NCBI GenBank assembly: GCA_013416795.1
Contig: RQSC01001202.1
Coordinates: 227,115 to 236,942, forward strand
DNA: 9,828 nt
Source: Prasinococcaceae sp. CCMP 1430
Taxonomy: Eukaryota > Plantae > Prasinodermophyta
Reading direction: 5' to 3'
Shown here one piece after another: positions 63-9,828 of this stretch. How positions within the stretch are numbered: the stretch's first letter is position 1; each line of letters begins with the position of its first letter. The notes beneath the pieces were generated by a model. That model had not been told where the DNA came from. It searched no databases and saw only the letters and a list, made by a program, of their open reading frames with translations. The position numbers were made by a program, and so were the translations under genes.

Positions 63-567
63 GCAGCGCACTGGCTGCCCGCCCGCGCGCCCGCGTGGCG
101 CGCCGCCGGTGACCGAGCGTAATCCACGCCGACGAAATCCCACTCCTCACGAGAATTTCCCCATGCGAACAACCCTTCTGGCGCGCGGCGCGGCCCCGGC
201 GTCGCGCGTCCGAACGCCGCTCCGGAAAGAAGCGGTCCCACGACACGCTCCGGAAGCGCGGGCGCCCCGCGCCGCCGCCGGCCGGGCGCCGACGAAAAAA
301 GGCGCGTCGTCAAGGAAATGGATCCAAAATCAGGTGACGTCGCCGCACATCGAAGTCCACCGGCGCTACCGACTGCGCGGAAAATGACCCGACTTGCTCG
401 GGACGAGCCCACCATCCAGCCAGCGAGCCAGAGGCAAAACGTTTCTCCTTCGTCGTTGCCAAACACATGGACCGACCGAGCCGACCTAACGACCCTCGCA
501 TCCGCTTGCTCGGATCGTCGGTGTCTTTTTTTGTGCGGGGGTGCCGCTTTTCGGGTCATTTCTCCGC

Positions 568-1302
568 ATGAAGGCGAGTCTATCCGGCCTCGGGGGGCTG
601 CTGGGCGTCGGGCGCGGCGGGGATGCGGAGGACGTCGAAACGGGCGCGCCAGCCGCGCAGGCTGCGGCCGGGGGCGCTGAGGAAGAGGGCAGCGGCGGCG
701 TGTTCGCGAGGCTGCTTGGGGGCGGCGCCACCGCCGCCGCGGACGGGGGCGGGGGCGCTGCCCCCGCTCCCTCGGCGGCGGAGGGCAGGTGGGGGAGGCT
801 GCGCGCCGCGATGACGCTTGGGAGCCTCCCCTCCGGCGCGCAATCCGGCGATGACGAGGACTCCGAGCTGCGCCGAATGGCCGAGTCCGTGTCGGGCTAC
901 TTCCGCATGAGCTACGAGACGCGCGTCAAGGGCTTCGCTATCTGCCTGACGCTCGCGGTGCTGTGTTCCCTCACCAGCTGGCTGCTCCTCTTCAGCCTGG
1001 CCCTCACGTCTTTCGCCATCATCTACTCGCTCGGCAACGCCCTCGGCCTTGCGTCGACCTTCTTCCTCATGGGGCCGAGGGCGCAGCTCAAGCGCATGTT
1101 CTCCAAGCGGCGCTGGGCGTCGGCGTGCGTGTATTTGTTCTGCCTGGCGGGGACGCTCTATTTCGCGCTGGTCGCCCAGGTCTTCGTCCTCGTGCTCGTG
1201 TTCATGATCGCGCAATGGCTCGCGCTCTGGTGGTACGCGCTCAGCTACATCCCGGGCGCCCAGCGCGTGGTGGGCGGCTGCGTGCGCACGTGCTTCGACT
1301 AA
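568..1302 (+). CDS. SFT2: SFT2/Got1-family vesicle transport membrane protein (244 aa from ATG 568)
   Basis: The ORF-track start at 541 is GTG; the first ATG is at 568 (MKASLSGLGG). A low-complexity Gly/Ala N-terminus precedes a four-TM core with family motifs SYETRVKGFAIC, FAIIYSLGN, STFFLMGPRAQLKRMF and ALWWYALSYIPG. No intron is needed. Confidence 0.88.
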   Translation: MKASLSGLGGLLGVGRGGDAEDVETGAPAAQAAAGGAEEEGSGGVFARLLGGGATAAADGGGGAAPAPSAAEGRWGRLRAAMTLGSLPSGAQSGDDEDSELRRMAESVSGYFRMSYETRVKGFAICLTLAVLCSLTSWLLLFSLALTSFAIIYSLGNALGLASTFFLMGPRAQLKRMFSKRRWASACVYLFCLAGTLYFALVAQVFVLVLVFMIAQWLALWWYALSYIPGAQRVVGGCVRTCFD

Positions 1303-1900
1303 ATGGGAATGGTGACGTGACAGATGGTCTCGGGACGCGCCACGCGCCCCCGCAGGCGCCGCGAATCGGCGACCCTCCGTGGCCTCTCGCTCCCGCGTAC
1401 TGTACGATCGATCGTGTACAGCGCGCGTGCGCGTCCCTCGCGCGCCGCGCGGCGAGCGGGACGCTGCTGGCCGGGAGGCCGCCAGGAAATGGCGCTCGCG
1501 CGCGCGCGCGCGCGCTCACTGCGCGCCGCGGAAGGCCTTGAGCGTGTCGTTCTCCGCGAGGTCGGGTCGCAAGGCGAGGATGCGCTCCAGCATGGCGGAC
1601 ACGCACCCCTCGTCGCCCTGTTGCCGCGCGGCCTCCGCGATGTTGAACATCACGTCCACGTCCTCTGGCGCCACCTTGAGCGCCTGCTCCCATATGAAGC
1701 GCGCGCCCTCTGGATCGTCGTCGCGCGTGAGGCGCAGCGTCGCGAGGTTGTTCATCGCATCGACGTGCGCCTTGTCGAGCTCCAGCGCGCGGATGTACTC
1801 TTCCTCCGCCTCCTGGAAGAGCTCGGTGGTCTGCAGGAAGTTGCCATACTGGTAGTGCGCCTCGGCGTCGGCGCCTTCGGCGAGCGCCGCGCTCTTGAAG
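620..1900 (+). repeat. First copy of a 1281-bp duplicated block (second copy 2136-3416)
   Basis: Constant offset of 1516. The ORF translations are identical in both copies (for example 963-1541 vs 2479-3057 and 1379-1855 vs 2895-3371), and I found no difference by eye. Confidence 0.95.
1397..1421. promoter_or_regulatory. Candidate 3'-end element between convergent genes (GTACTGTACG plus palindrome ACGATCGATCGT)
   Basis: AT-richer, near-palindromic island between the stops at 1302 (+) and 1516 (-). The same 10-mer recurs at 5103-5112, downstream of the FG-GAP gene. Function is inferred. Confidence 0.3.
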
Positions 1901-2134
1901 CGCTCCTCGGCGGCGCTCACCAGGCGGCGGAAGGCGCCCTCCGCGCGCTCGACGGCGGCCGCGTCCTCCCCCGCGGCCTCCACGGCCGAGCGGCGCGCCG
2001 CGAGGAGGCCCTGGAAGTCCGTGCCCTTCCCGACCCTGAGGATGGCGCGGGGGTCGTCGGGGCTCATGGGCATGCCCTCGTCGCCGTCGGTGTACTCGCT
2101 GCCCAGCGCGGCCGCGCCGCGCGCGGCCGCGCGC
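1516..2134 (-). CDS. TPR-repeat protein, 5' end probably cut by the N at 2135
   Basis: Three TPR-like 34-35 aa units: [11 protein letters not shown]...[25 protein letters not shown]...[15 protein letters not shown] and [10 protein letters not shown]...[12 protein letters not shown]. Stop TGA at 1516-1518. Confidence 0.8.
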
Positions 2135-2135
2135 N
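2135..2135. other. Single-N junction between pieces A and B
   Basis: Sequence after the N restarts at the equivalent of position 620, inside SFT2. Confidence 0.95.
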
Positions 2136-2818
2136 GGGATGCGGAGGACGTCGAAACGGGCGCGCCAGCCGCGCAGGCTGCGGCCGGGGGCGCTGAGGAA
2201 GAGGGCAGCGGCGGCGTGTTCGCGAGGCTGCTTGGGGGCGGCGCCACCGCCGCCGCGGACGGGGGCGGGGGCGCTGCCCCCGCTCCCTCGGCGGCGGAGG
2301 GCAGGTGGGGGAGGCTGCGCGCCGCGATGACGCTTGGGAGCCTCCCCTCCGGCGCGCAATCCGGCGATGACGAGGACTCCGAGCTGCGCCGAATGGCCGA
2401 GTCCGTGTCGGGCTACTTCCGCATGAGCTACGAGACGCGCGTCAAGGGCTTCGCTATCTGCCTGACGCTCGCGGTGCTGTGTTCCCTCACCAGCTGGCTG
2501 CTCCTCTTCAGCCTGGCCCTCACGTCTTTCGCCATCATCTACTCGCTCGGCAACGCCCTCGGCCTTGCGTCGACCTTCTTCCTCATGGGGCCGAGGGCGC
2601 AGCTCAAGCGCATGTTCTCCAAGCGGCGCTGGGCGTCGGCGTGCGTGTATTTGTTCTGCCTGGCGGGGACGCTCTATTTCGCGCTGGTCGCCCAGGTCTT
2701 CGTCCTCGTGCTCGTGTTCATGATCGCGCAATGGCTCGCGCTCTGGTGGTACGCGCTCAGCTACATCCCGGGCGCCCAGCGCGTGGTGGGCGGCTGCGTG
2801 CGCACGTGCTTCGACTAA
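2136..2818 (+). CDS. SFT2: SFT2/Got1-family protein, second copy, 5'-truncated at the N
   Basis: Matches 620-1302. Confidence 0.85.
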
Positions 2819-3031
2819 ATGGGAATGGTGACGTGACAGATGGTCTCGGGACGCGCCACGCGCCCCCGCAGGCGCCGCGAATCGGCGACCCTCCGTGGCC
2901 TCTCGCTCCCGCGTACTGTACGATCGATCGTGTACAGCGCGCGTGCGCGTCCCTCGCGCGCCGCGCGGCGAGCGGGACGCTGCTGGCCGGGAGGCCGCCA
3001 GGAAATGGCGCTCGCGCGCGCGCGCGCGCGC

Positions 3032-3416
3032 TCACTGCGCGCCGCGGAAGGCCTTGAGCGTGTCGTTCTCCGCGAGGTCGGGTCGCAAGGCGAGGATGCG
3101 CTCCAGCATGGCGGACACGCACCCCTCGTCGCCCTGTTGCCGCGCGGCCTCCGCGATGTTGAACATCACGTCCACGTCCTCTGGCGCCACCTTGAGCGCC
3201 TGCTCCCATATGAAGCGCGCGCCCTCTGGATCGTCGTCGCGCGTGAGGCGCAGCGTCGCGAGGTTGTTCATCGCATCGACGTGCGCCTTGTCGAGCTCCA
3301 GCGCGCGGATGTACTCTTCCTCCGCCTCCTGGAAGAGCTCGGTGGTCTGCAGGAAGTTGCCATACTGGTAGTGCGCCTCGGCGTCGGCGCCTTCGGCGAG
3401 CGCCGCGCTCTTGAAG
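3032..3416 (-). CDS. 3' part of the TPR gene, second copy, with its 5' part replaced by unrelated sequence beyond 3416
   Basis: Matches 1516-1900. Identity stops after TTGAAG (1900/3416). Confidence 0.75.
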
Positions 3417-3471
3417 GAGCGGTCGTCTCGGCGGCGGCCGCGGCAGGAAGCCGGGGGCGAAGAGGGCGAGG

Positions 3472-3684
3472 GTGAGTGTTCGGTGGGAGGCAGAAGCGAA
3501 GCAGGCGTGCCGACTGCCGCGCGTGGCGGGGGGAGGGGCAGCGTAGGCGGGGCGCGGGCGCGGGGGTCGAGGCCGGGCGCCCGAGGTTTCGAGCGCGCGG
3601 AGCCCGGGGTCGCTGCGGCTCGCGCTGACGCAGGCGCCCGCGACGCGCGACGCGCTCGTCCGCGCGAATCACCTCCCTCGCCAG
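3472..3684 (+). other. Putative 5'-leader intron of UBL5
   Basis: Donor G|GTGAGT at 3472, branch-like GCTGAC at 3624-3629, and CAG acceptors ending at 3633 or (after a pyrimidine-rich run) at 3684. ATG at 3714. No transcript evidence. Confidence 0.4.
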
Positions 3685-3713
3685 CGACACGCCCCGCTCG
3701 CCCCGCCGCGGCG

Positions 3714-3935
3714 ATGATCGAGGTGGTGTGCAACGACCGCCTGGGCAAGAAGGTGCGCGTCAAGTGCAACGCCGACGACACCGTGGGGGACTTCAAGAAG
3801 CTGCTCGCCGCGCAGACGGGCACCAAGCCGGAGAAGCTGCGCCTTCAGAAGTGGCACACCGTCTTCAAGGACCACATCACGCTCGAGGACTACGAGATCC
3901 ACGACGGCATGAACCTCGAGCTCTACTACAACTAG
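3714..3935 (+). CDS. UBL5: Ubiquitin-like protein 5 (Hub1), 73 aa
   Basis: [36 protein letters not shown]...[10 protein letters not shown]: canonical length and C-terminal YY-x motif. The ORF track extends it upstream from a non-ATG start. Confidence 0.97.
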
Positions 3936-4048
3936 CAGTCTCTGTAGCTAGAGAGGTCGAGCTCGAGCCCCGGGGCTCGCGCCGAGAGCGACGGCCGCGC
4001 CGCGAAGGCGCCAAGCATCGCCTAAAATCTTGCGCACGTCCTCGATCG

Positions 4049-4106: not shown

Positions 4107-4433
4107 TCAGCTGGCCCCCGCCTCTGCGAGCTTTGCGTCGGCCTCCTTGACGGCGCGCGTGAGGTGCAGGACCTGGTACTGGAGCGCGGCGTTCTTGGCG
4201 GCGAGCCCCGAGACGATGGAGGCAACCTCGTCGCGTTCGGTGCGCACCATGTAGTACTCCGCGCGCGCCTTGCCCAGCAGCTTGCGCAGCGCCCACAGCT
4301 CGTCGACGGACGCGCCGGGCGCTCCCGCGCCGCCCGCGGCCGCCTCGCCGGCTCCCCCGATCTCGAGCGCTGCGAGCCTCCTCTCGGCGTCCGCGGCGCG
4401 CGCCTCGAACGCCGCGAGCGCCGCCGCGTCCAT
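4107..4433 (-). CDS. Small two-coiled-coil protein (108 aa), resembling the AIMP1/TARS3 N-terminal leucine-zipper region
   Basis: Heptad segments EARAADAERRLAALE and VSGLAAKNAALQYQVLHLTRAVKEADAKL are separated by a Gly/Ala linker, with GC3-rich codons. The family resemblance is from memory, not a search. Confidence 0.7.
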   Translation of the reverse strand: MDAAALAAFEARAADAERRLAALEIGGAGEAAAGGAGAPGASVDELWALRKLLGKARAEYYMVRTERDEVASIVSGLAAKNAALQYQVLHLTRAVKEADAKLAEAGAS

Positions 4434-5222: not shown

Positions 5223-7653
5223 TTACTTGGGCATGCATCCATGTTTCTTGCTGAACTTGCAATTGTTCTTGGCGTCGCCCTTGTTGCACTTCTTCTTCGA
5301 CTTCTTCGCCTTCTTGCAGAGCTTCTTGACCTGCTTCTTCGAAAGCTTCTGGCGTGCGCACGTTGGCGCGGGAGGGCCAGGCCACGCAGACGAGATCACA
5401 CGGCGCGTCGGCGCTGGCGTCAGCATCATCATCCCGCGCGATCGAGCTCGCGCCAGCCAGGCACCAGCAGTGGGGCACGCCGCGTCGACGAGCAAGCGCT
5501 GAGGGACCAGCGCGCGTACCTTTGTCTTCTTCTCTGCCTCCTTCGGTGGCGGGCTCGGAGGAGGAGGAGGAGGAGGGGGCGGAGGGGGAGGCGGGCTCGG
5601 AGGAGGCGGAGGCGCAGGAGTCTTCATGTCCTTCTTCGAGGGCTTCTTGCCCTTGTTGCCATTCTCGCCGTTCTCGCTCCTTTTTTTGCCCTTCTCGGCC
5701 TTCTTTTTACCCGTCGTGCCCTTCTCGTCCTTCTTGCCCTTCTTGTCCTTCGCATTCTGCCGTTTTGCATGGATCACGCATCGCAGGGCGTGGTGGGGAC
5801 GACCCAGCCGCGCGAGTGCGATTGATTGGGCGGCCGGGCGGCGGCGTGCGAAGCGTTTGCGCGCACGCATGAGCGAGGGAGGGCCAGACGACGGAGACGA
5901 AAGCATGCGGCGAGTCGGCGCTGGCGTCAGCATCATCGCGCCTGCGATCGAGCGCGCGCCAGCCAGATGAGGCACGCCGCATCGACAGGCACGCGCGCAG
6001 GGGGCAGCGCGCTCACCTTCTTCTTCTTCTTCTCTGCCTTCTTCGGAGGCAGGCTCGGAGGAGGAGGAGAGGGGGGCGGAGGAGGAGGCGGGCTTGGAGG
6101 AGGCAGGGGAGGAGGGGGGGAAGGGGGCGGAGGTGGCGGGCTCGGAGGAGGAGGAGGGGGGGGCGAAGGAGGCAGACTCGGAGGAGGCGGGCTCGGCGGA
6201 GGCGGGCTCGGAGGAGGAGGGGAGGAGGAGGCGGGCTAGGAGGAGGCGGGCTAGGAGGAGGCGGGCTCGGAGGAGGAGGGGGAGGGGGAGGAGGAGGCGG
6301 GCTAGGAGGAGGCGGGCTAGGAGGAGGCGGGCTCGGAGGAGGAGGGGGAGGAGGAGGCGGGCTCGGAGGCGGGCTCGGAGGAGGAGGTGGAGGAGGAGGC
6401 GGGCTTGGCGGCGGGCTCGGGGGCGGCATCGGAGAGGGCGGAGAAGGAGTAGGAAGCTCGAACACGTACGCGCTGCCGCTGTCGTTGTCCGTCTGAGCGC
6501 CCACCAGCGCGTAGTCGGCCGAGAGCGCCACGCTGGAGCCCAAGTACGCATCCGCCGCGGCGTCGCTGGCCACAAGCTTGGACAGCTGCGACCACGACGT
6601 CCCCGAGCGAAAAAACACGTACGCGCTGCCGCTGCTGGAGCCGCTGTCGTCGTCAGTACTAGCGCCCACCAGCGCATAGTCGCCCGAGAGCGCCACTCTG
6701 CGGCCGAAGGTGTCACCATCCTCGCGGTCGCTGGCCAACAGCTTGGCCTGCTGCGACCACGACGCCCCCCCCGAGCGGAAAAACACGTACGCGCTGCCGC
6801 TCCTTGAGCCGTAGTCGTCGTCCCGATAAGCGCCCACCAGCGCGTAGTCGCCCGAGAGCGCCACGCTGATGCCGAACTGGTCATACGCCTCGGCGTCGTT
6901 GGCCACCAGCTTGGCGCTCTGCGACCACGACGTCCCGAAGCGATAAAAGACGTACGCGCTGCCGCTGTCGTCGTCGCCGCTGTCGTCGTTTCCAAAATCA
7001 GCGCCAACCAGCGCGTAGTTGCCCGAGAGCGCCACACTGATGCCGAACTGGTCATACGCCGCGAAGTCGCTGGCATACAGTATGGCCTGCTGCGACCACG
7101 ACGTCCCCGAGCGAAAAAACACGTACGCGCTGCCGCTCATGGTGCCGCCGTCGGAAAAAGCGCCCACCAGCGCGTAGTCGCCCGAGAGCGCCACGTTCTG
7201 GCCGAAGGAGTCACCCGCCTCGCCGTCTCCGAGCACCAGCTTGGCCTGCTGCGACCACGTCGTGTCCGAGCGCACGAACACGTACGCGCTGCCGCTCTCG
7301 GAGCCGTCCCCATAAGCGCCCACCAGCGCGTACTCGCCCGAGAGCGCCACGCTCCAGCCAAAGAAGTCAGATGCTGCGCCGTCGCTGGCCGCCAGCTTGG
7401 CCTGCTGCGACCACGACGTCCCCGAGCGCAAAAAGACGTACGCGCTGCCGCTGGAGGAGCCGCTGTCGTCGTCATTCGGAGCGCCCACCAGCGCGTAGTC
7501 GCCCGAGAGCGCCACGCTGTAGCCGAAGTTGTCATTGTCCGCGCCGTCGCTGGCCACCAGCTTGGACACTTCCTCTAGGGCGGCATGCGTCATGCGCACC
7601 GCCATGGTCGCCAGCATCGCAGCCCATGCAAGCAAGCGACGAGGGGTCGGCAT
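5223..7653 (-). CDS. Secreted FG-GAP 7-bladed beta-propeller protein with SPPPP stalk and Lys/Cys-rich tail. Exons 7653-6017, 5756-5520 and 5348-5223; about 666 aa after repairing a 1-nt frameshift at 6219-6222
   Basis: Signal peptide MPTPRRLLAWAAMLATMAVRMTHA, then seven repeats of KLxASDGxxxDxFGxSVALSGDYALVGA...SGSAYVF (FG-GAP_2-like). Two GT-AG phase-0 introns join the Pro stalk to Lys-rich exons in frame. Exon 1 is 1637 nt, one short of a multiple of 3, which matches a G4 run where the neighbouring repeat units have G5. Confidence 0.8.
5349..5519 (-). other. Spliceosomal intron 2 of the FG-GAP gene (171 nt, phase 0)
   Basis: AAG|GTACGC...gatgCTGAC...cgcCAG|AAG. It interrupts Lys-rich coding sequence. 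It is in frame and stop-free, so retention cannot be excluded. Confidence 0.75.
5757..6016 (-). other. Spliceosomal intron 1 of the FG-GAP gene (260 nt, phase 0)
   Basis: AAG|GTGAGC...ggCAG|AAT. It contains an in-frame stop, and splicing restores KKKKK|NAKDKK. Confidence 0.75.
6040..6455 (-). repeat. Extensin-like Ser-Pro(n) coding repeat
   Basis: Tandem AGC CCG CCT CCT CCT/CCG units. Confidence 0.9.
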
Positions 7654-7659
7654 TTTGTT

Positions 7660-7689
<30 letters not shown>
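7660..7689 (-). repeat. (CAA)10 tract in the 5' leader of the FG-GAP gene
   Basis: TTG x10 on the + strand. The mRNA sense reads (CAA)10-AACAAA-ATG. Confidence 0.9.
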
Positions 7690-7690
<1 letters not shown>

Positions 7691-8020
7691 CGTGTATGGT
7701 GGTGGTGATGTGTGTGGGGGAAGGAGCTGTTGGTGGTGGGGTAGCTGCTGATTAGAGGGGGCTTCGAGCATCAGCGGGCACGCGCGCGCAACATTGCGTG
7801 CGGGGGGCGCGCACACGCTGCGGGCGGGCCTGCGCGCGCGCAGGGAGGAGGTGAGGCGCCAACAGAGCCGGAACGAACCCAAAATGCGACCACCAGCATG
7901 AGGGCGCCGTCCGACAAGGAGGCACGTTGCGCCAGCGTGCTGGGAGCGTGCGCGCATCGCGGGCGAGCAGCGGCCGCGCGCGCGAGCAAAGGCCGCACGC
8001 GCGCCCCGCGCGGCCGCCGT

Positions 8021-8398
8021 GCACTGGTCGCCTTTCATGCAGAAGCCGCGGAACCAGTGGCGGCAGACGATCTGCCGAAACTTGCTCGCAGGCAAATCGC
8101 CGCGCGGGCCGTTGTCACCGTCGGCAGCGGCCGCGCCCTGTGCTCTGGCCCCCGCGCCGTTGGCGGAGGGTGTCGCGGGGGAAGAAGATGCGCGCCTGCT
8201 CCCTGCGGTGCCGCCTTCATCTCCGGGGCCTCGGTTGGGACGCCCGAGCGCCGTCGCGCCCGCGTGTGGCGCGGGCAAAATCTTGCCGTCCGTCAGCGCC
8301 GCATTCGCCAACGACGCCTGCAGCGCGGCGATTTGCTCGTCGCCGCTGAGGCTGCTGCTCGGCGTGCGCGGCGCCTTGTTCGGCGTGTCACCAGCGGT
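8021..8398 (-). CDS. Fragment of a CPSF30-like CCCH zinc-finger protein, open at the N and broken inside finger 1
   Basis: FRQIVCRHWFRGFCMKGDQC closely resembles the first finger of plant-type CPSF30 (recalled as FRQTVCRHWLRxLCMKGDACGFLH). The His and the later fingers are absent. Confidence 0.65.
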
Positions 8399-8399
8399 N
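8399..8399. other. Single-N junction between pieces C and D
   Basis: Poly-Pro coding sequence abuts the unrelated CPSF30-like sequence across the N. Confidence 0.95.
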
Positions 8400-9814
8400 G
8401 GAGGGGGCGGAGGAGGCGGGCTTGGAGGAGGCGGGCTCGGAGGAGGCGGGCTCGGAGGAGGAGGAGGAGGGGGCGGAGGAGGCGGGCTCGGAGGGGGCGG
8501 GCTCGGCGGAGGCGGGCTCGGAGGAGGAGGAGGAGGAGGAGGAGGAGGAGGAGGCGGGCTCGGCGGCGGACTCGGAGGAGAAGGTGGAGGAGTAGGAAGC
8601 TCAAGCACGTACGCGCTGCCGCTGTCGTCGCCGCCGTCGTCGTCGCCATAAGCGCCCACCAGCGCGTAGTCGCCCGAGAGCGCAACGCTGACGCCGAAGT
8701 TGTCATACTCCGCGCCGTCGCTGGCCACCAGCTTGGCCTGCTGCGACCACGACGTCCCGTCGCGCAAGAACACGTACGCGCTGCCGCTCCCGGAGCCGCT
8801 GTCGTCGTCCGCATAAGCGCCCACCAGCGCGTAGTCGCCCGAGAGCGCAACGCTGACGCCGAAGTTGTCATACTCCGCGCCGTCGCTGGCCACCAGCTTG
8901 GCCTGCTGCGACCACGACGTCCCGTCGCGCAAGAACACGTACGCGCTGCCGCTGGCGGAGCCGTCGTCGGCGTCCCAATAAGCGCCCACCAGCGCGTAGT
9001 CGCCCGAGAGCGCAACGCTGACGCCGAAGAGGTCATCCTGCGCGCCGTCGCTGGCTGTCAGCTTGGCCTGCTGCGACCACGACGTCCCCGACCGCAAGAA
9101 CACGTACGCGCTGCCGCTAAAGTCGCCGTTGTCGTCGTCCCTAGAAGCGCCCACCAGCGCGTAGTCGCCCGAGAGCGCCACGCTGACGCCGAAGAGGTCA
9201 TCCTGCGCGCCGTCGCTGGCTGTCAGCTTGGCCTGCTGCGACCACGACGCGCCATCGCGCAAGAACACGTACGCGCTGCCGCTGTCCTCGCCGCCGTCGT
9301 CGTCATAAGGAGCGCCCACCAGCGCGTAGTCGCCCGAGAGCGCCACGCTATAGCCGAAGTAGTCACCCACCGCGCCGTCGCCGGCCACCAGCTTGGCCTG
9401 CTGCCCCCACGACGTCCCGTCGCGCACGAACACGTACGCGCTGCCGCTCCCGGAGCCGCTGTCGTCGTCATAGAAAGCGCCAACCAGCGCGTACTCGCCC
9501 GAGAGCGCCACGCTCCAGCCAAAGTAGTCACCCTCCGCGCCGTCGCTGGCCGCCTCGAACCGGACGACGCTGGTGCTGCAGGGGCTCGCGTAAAAGACGT
9601 ACGCGCTGCCGCTGGAGGAGCCGCTGTCGTCGTCGTTATAGGCGCCCACCAGCGCGTAGTCGCCCGAGAGCGCCACGCTGTAGCCGAAGCGGTCATCGTA
9701 CGCGCCGTCGCTGGCCACCAGCTTGGACACTTCCTCTAGGGCGGCATGCGTCATGCGCACCGCCATGGTCGCCAGCATCGCAGCCCATGCAAGCAAGCGA
9801 CGAGGGGTCGGCAT
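8400..9814 (-). CDS. Second secreted FG-GAP 7-bladed propeller protein (paralog or allele), 3'-truncated in the Pro stalk
   Basis: Same signal peptide as the copy in C, seven FG-GAP repeats at about 165-nt period, then an SPPPP stalk running into the N. Confidence 0.88.
9555..9591. other. 37-nt block that is the unreversed complement of the homologous bases 7394-7430
   Basis: AGCTTGGCCTGCTGCGACCACGACGTCCCCGAGCGCA (C) vs TCGAACCGGACGACGCTGGTGCTGCAGGGGCTCGCGT (D): 37/37 complementary position by position, with identical flanks. Confidence 0.95.
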
Positions 9815-9828
9815 TTTGTTTTGTTGTT

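Follow-up and report, generated by a model that had tools for sequence, protein, structure and literature searches.

The window analysed here, by which we mean the whole 9,828-nt stretch of Prasinococcaceae sp. CCMP 1430, has a G+C content of 69.6% and carries two neighbouring minus-strand genes, referred to below as C and D, that encode an identical signal peptide (Table 1). Both genes resemble known seven-bladed propellers of the FG-GAP_2 family (PF14312, cut-off 23) in having seven repeats after the signal peptide. The presence of seven PF14312 repeats per gene indicates a seven-bladed beta-propeller, and the product of gene D is predicted to be a secreted propeller on a proline stalk. Bacterial and metagenomic FG-GAP_2 relatives can be found by the thousands, at 50-64% identity to the algal proteins; the latter differ from these relatives in their long Ser-Pro stalk. 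This family identity concerns the host gene only and has no bearing on the anomaly described below. Gene D was read up to a single N at position 8399, so that it extends from 9814 down to at least 8402. The N borders unique sequence on one side and a GGAGG-type stalk repeat on the other, inside the gene. Downstream of the stalk of D there is a minus-strand reading frame without a Pfam match, which contains a CCCH-like string (C-x8-C-x5-C).

Table 1. Coordinates of the genes, repeats and aligned blocks in the window
Feature	Position	Strand	Remarks
Gene D: signal peptide, seven FG-GAP_2 repeats, start of Ser/Pro stalk	8402..9814	-	PF14312, 483.5 bits, 7 stretches
Gene C: same leader, seven FG-GAP_2 repeats, Ser/Pro stalk	6013..7653	-	PF14312, 426.7 bits, 7 stretches
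Complement patch	9555..9591		Exact complement of the expected sequence
Homologous block with normal linker in paralogue C	7394..7430		TARA contig L007 identical here
Left flank of patch	9537..9554		Identical to 7376-7393
Right flank of patch	9592..9634		Identical to 7431-7473
Reading frame downstream of the stalk of D	7535..8398	-	No Pfam match
SFT2/Got1-like gene	541..1302	+	
TPR gene	1516..2247	-	
Duplication, copy 1	620..1900		Perfect, 1281 nt
Duplication, copy 2	2136..3416		Perfect, 1281 nt
UBL5/Hub1 gene	3714..3935	+	

Genes C and D can be aligned at an offset of 2161 over 354 nt (7314-7667 against 9475-9828). Outside the block discussed here, 16 positions differ in this alignment, and 14 of them are found in loop-coding segments of the first blade (7370-7375, 7474-7480 and 7529-7539, with the D positions at +2161); the leader and the scaffold around these variable loop spots are identical between the two genes. 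Within the first of the seven blades of D lies a run of 37 bases in which every base is the Watson-Crick complement of its counterpart in C (37 of 37), without any substitution relative to the exact complement. The run is bounded by a left flank of 18 nt and a right flank of 43 nt that are identical in the two genes, just as a previous sequence-only reading of this DNA had described it. The pattern is present in the given sequence, and chance is impossible as its source: the probability of an in-register complement run of 37 nt is ~4^-37. The patch covers codons 75-87 of gene D, from position 2 of codon 75 to position 2 of codon 87, and is not codon-aligned. On the minus strand, it changes LRSGTSWSQQAKL into YASPCSTSVVRFE with neither a stop codon nor a frameshift, which bears out a further point of that reading.

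Clustered differences between paralogues usually come from inversion, template switching or gene conversion from a diverged donor. Micro-inversions and template-switch mutations are like the present case in that a contiguous multi-base change is placed between identical flanks in one step. However, an inversion or fold-back template switch yields the reverse complement, and only 11 of the 37 bases in D agree with the C block when the latter is reverse-complemented, which refutes these two routes. Since the plain reverse of the C block also matches poorly (8 of 37), a mirror repeat is excluded together with an inversion, and here too the sequence-only reading was right. For gene conversion, no donor sequence could be found: on neither strand of the window does the 37-mer have a second copy with up to 3 mismatches, and it is absent from the prokaryote genomes, the viral contigs and all of the fetched loci. 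An origin by any of these processes must be regarded as extremely improbable.

The whole window was scanned at every offset, in direct and reversed orientation, with all four base-swap transforms. All complement-only runs of at least 22 nt pair 9555-9591 with the corresponding linker of a different blade, with lengths of 32, 31, 29, 29, 25 nt and so on. Gene D is thus the odd one out, because every such run involves this one segment. The window contains one complement-only patch and no patch of another transform.

The same polarity emerges at the protein level. When the two proteins were cut into blade units, the inter-blade linker, [LVFY]R-GTSWSQQAKL, was found to be nearly invariant in 11 units of C and D; the first unit of D alone deviates and reads YASPCSTSVVRFE in its place. 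Scored with a blade HMM built from those 11 units, the first unit of D reaches 73.8 bits in its present form and 108.2 bits once the patch has been complemented, compared with 98.2 bits for the matching first unit of C. The complemented patch encodes the linker residues of gene C. As it stands, the patch deprives the blade of its invariant Trp and its QQAKL strand. Judged by its sibling units, D is the derived state, because the other 11 units keep the linker and D alone departs from it; the earlier claim of this direction of change, which had been argued from the restored linker, agrees with both the HMM scores and the unit comparison.

Independent sequence could be found for gene C. The TARA Oceans metagenome contig L007 aligns with 7131-7769 at 98.1% and shows no difference from gene C across the linker block, so that the linker state of gene C is confirmed in nature. 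Protein P0121, encoded on this contig, was identified by protein search as the TARA orthologue of gene C. For gene D, the protein searches returned generic FG-GAP proteins and this one TARA orthologue of gene C, but no orthologue of D. Scans of JGI metagenomes gave no match, either with a D-specific 23-mer or with the shared flanks placed around 37 free bases, and in exact look-ups neither the C open reading frame nor the SFT2-like protein gave a record. Two D-specific sites, 9523-9544 and 9630-9652, proved to be unique. The UBL5 neighbour gave access to further contigs (L001-L006 and L008-L020), none of which extends to the propeller genes. Six of these, L001-L006, are short TARA contigs of the same species that share 97.6-99.7% identity with the UBL5 region. 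The others, L008-L020, are TARA and Logan contigs of at most 16 kb from a related, compact, intron-poor picoeukaryote, with ~90% identity in UBL5. They show partial synteny (window 4257-4433) and have other neighbours, including PIG-F and a protein kinase, with no propeller genes.

Could the patch be real DNA? In that case, 37 nt of D would have been copied in parallel rather than antiparallel orientation in one step, or would have been altered by some other process. The open frame and the otherwise intact gene could be taken to favour this. However, when 37-nt complement patches were placed at random, the frame stayed open in 1120 of 1175 cases in D and in 1005 of 1157 cases in C; because 87-95% of random patches behave in this way, the intact frame carries no weight as a sign of function or of real DNA. 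The other features of the patch also speak against such an origin, namely the loss of the invariant Trp and of the QQAKL strand, the exactness of the complement with its zero substitutions, and the lack of a donor copy in any of the sequence sets listed above. Templated synthesis is antiparallel, and we know of no polymerase, repair or recombination pathway that produces a complement-only tract, nor of any polymerase or repair route that yields an exact, in-register complement. The base composition of the patch also stands out: its plus-strand G-C skew of +0.15 is the most extreme in the gene (mean -0.13, sd 0.12), exactly as would be expected of a complemented segment. A biological event at this site is accordingly very improbable. 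The sequence-only reading had preferred an artefact over biology, and this preference is upheld by the exact complement, the destruction of a near-invariant linker and the flip of the skew to the extreme of the gene; the origin of the patch is nearly certain to be non-biological.

One non-biological route is the decoding of two-base colour space, as used in SOLiD sequencing. If a colour-space consensus had a complement-class miscall at either edge of a block, all bases between the two miscalls would be decoded as their complement. A misread colour is described as propagating through translation into bases (PMC4569514). The arithmetic of this proposal, which had been put forward from the letters alone, is valid: a comparison of C with D in SOLiD colours shows two differing dinucleotides and no more, 7393/7394 (1 to 2) and 7430/7431 (0 to 3), and both differences are of the XOR-3, or complement, class. 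In this respect the patch is just like a colour-space mis-decoding. It is unlike one in that colour errors should give the two other transforms, A<->C/G<->T and A<->G/C<->T, about equally often, and neither was seen between paralogues or duplicates in the window. Searches for these two transforms and for mirror runs gave low-complexity matches only, in a comparison that has power only where this one window holds paralogous or duplicated sequence. The route also requires two matching errors in a consensus. We consider it unlikely.

A more direct explanation is a plain strand-handling error or edit, in which a segment was complemented without being reversed; we put the probability of this at roughly 80%. 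It is ranked above SOLiD decoding because the complement is the sole transform seen in the window. A complement-only operation gives precisely the observed change, at 37 of 37 positions, in register and with the flanks untouched. According to this explanation, 37 bases of D would have been written as their complement, in place and without reversal, at an in-silico step. During assembly, this could have happened when reads were placed, gaps filled, or the consensus built or polished; alternatively, the record or the copy analysed may have been edited afterwards, deliberately or by accident. Of the possible forms, the likeliest is a program that complemented bases coming from a minus-strand alignment but already stored in plus-strand orientation, although the kind of software step is something we infer. 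In that case, the real gene D would have an ordinary blade linker here. There are precedents of a sort, in that sequence entries or segments have been deposited reversed-only or complemented-only. Such orientation errors likewise give sequence that is exact, in register and biologically impossible, but here a short internal block of an otherwise correct contig is affected, rather than a whole entry, which suggests that the step acted on single reads or segments. A literature search with complement-only and reverse-only phrases found no paper about assembly artefacts.

Read as a strand-handling error, the patch has little biological import, and gene D almost certainly carries the ordinary linker. 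The finding is rather a data-quality flag for the assembly. Complement-only blocks silently rewrite codons and can make false stops and false variable regions; in repeat families like this propeller family, they could pass for diversification. If such blocks recur in this assembly, its gene models and evolutionary studies based on it should be screened for them. If, against long odds, the patch were real DNA, it would represent a mutational route without precedent, by which short tracts are copied in parallel orientation.

Other parts of the window show signs of a rough draft, which were counted toward the artefact reading. There are three isolated single Ns, at 2135, 4049 and 8399, which look like the contig joins of a short-read scaffold. 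There is also a perfect duplication of 1281 nt, the second copy of which begins directly after the N at 2135 (Table 1). Copy 1 holds the proper 5' end of the SFT2/Got1-like gene and the 5' part of the TPR gene; copy 2 is without the ends of these two genes. The duplication may be a strain-specific rearrangement, but more probably arose as an artefact of scaffolding or gap closure. The six TARA contigs of the same species match only a 594-nt block (3417-4010) around the UBL5/Hub1 gene. Their similarity to the window ends exactly at 3416/3417, the end of the second copy of the duplication, and at 4010/4011, and further upstream they also differ among themselves.
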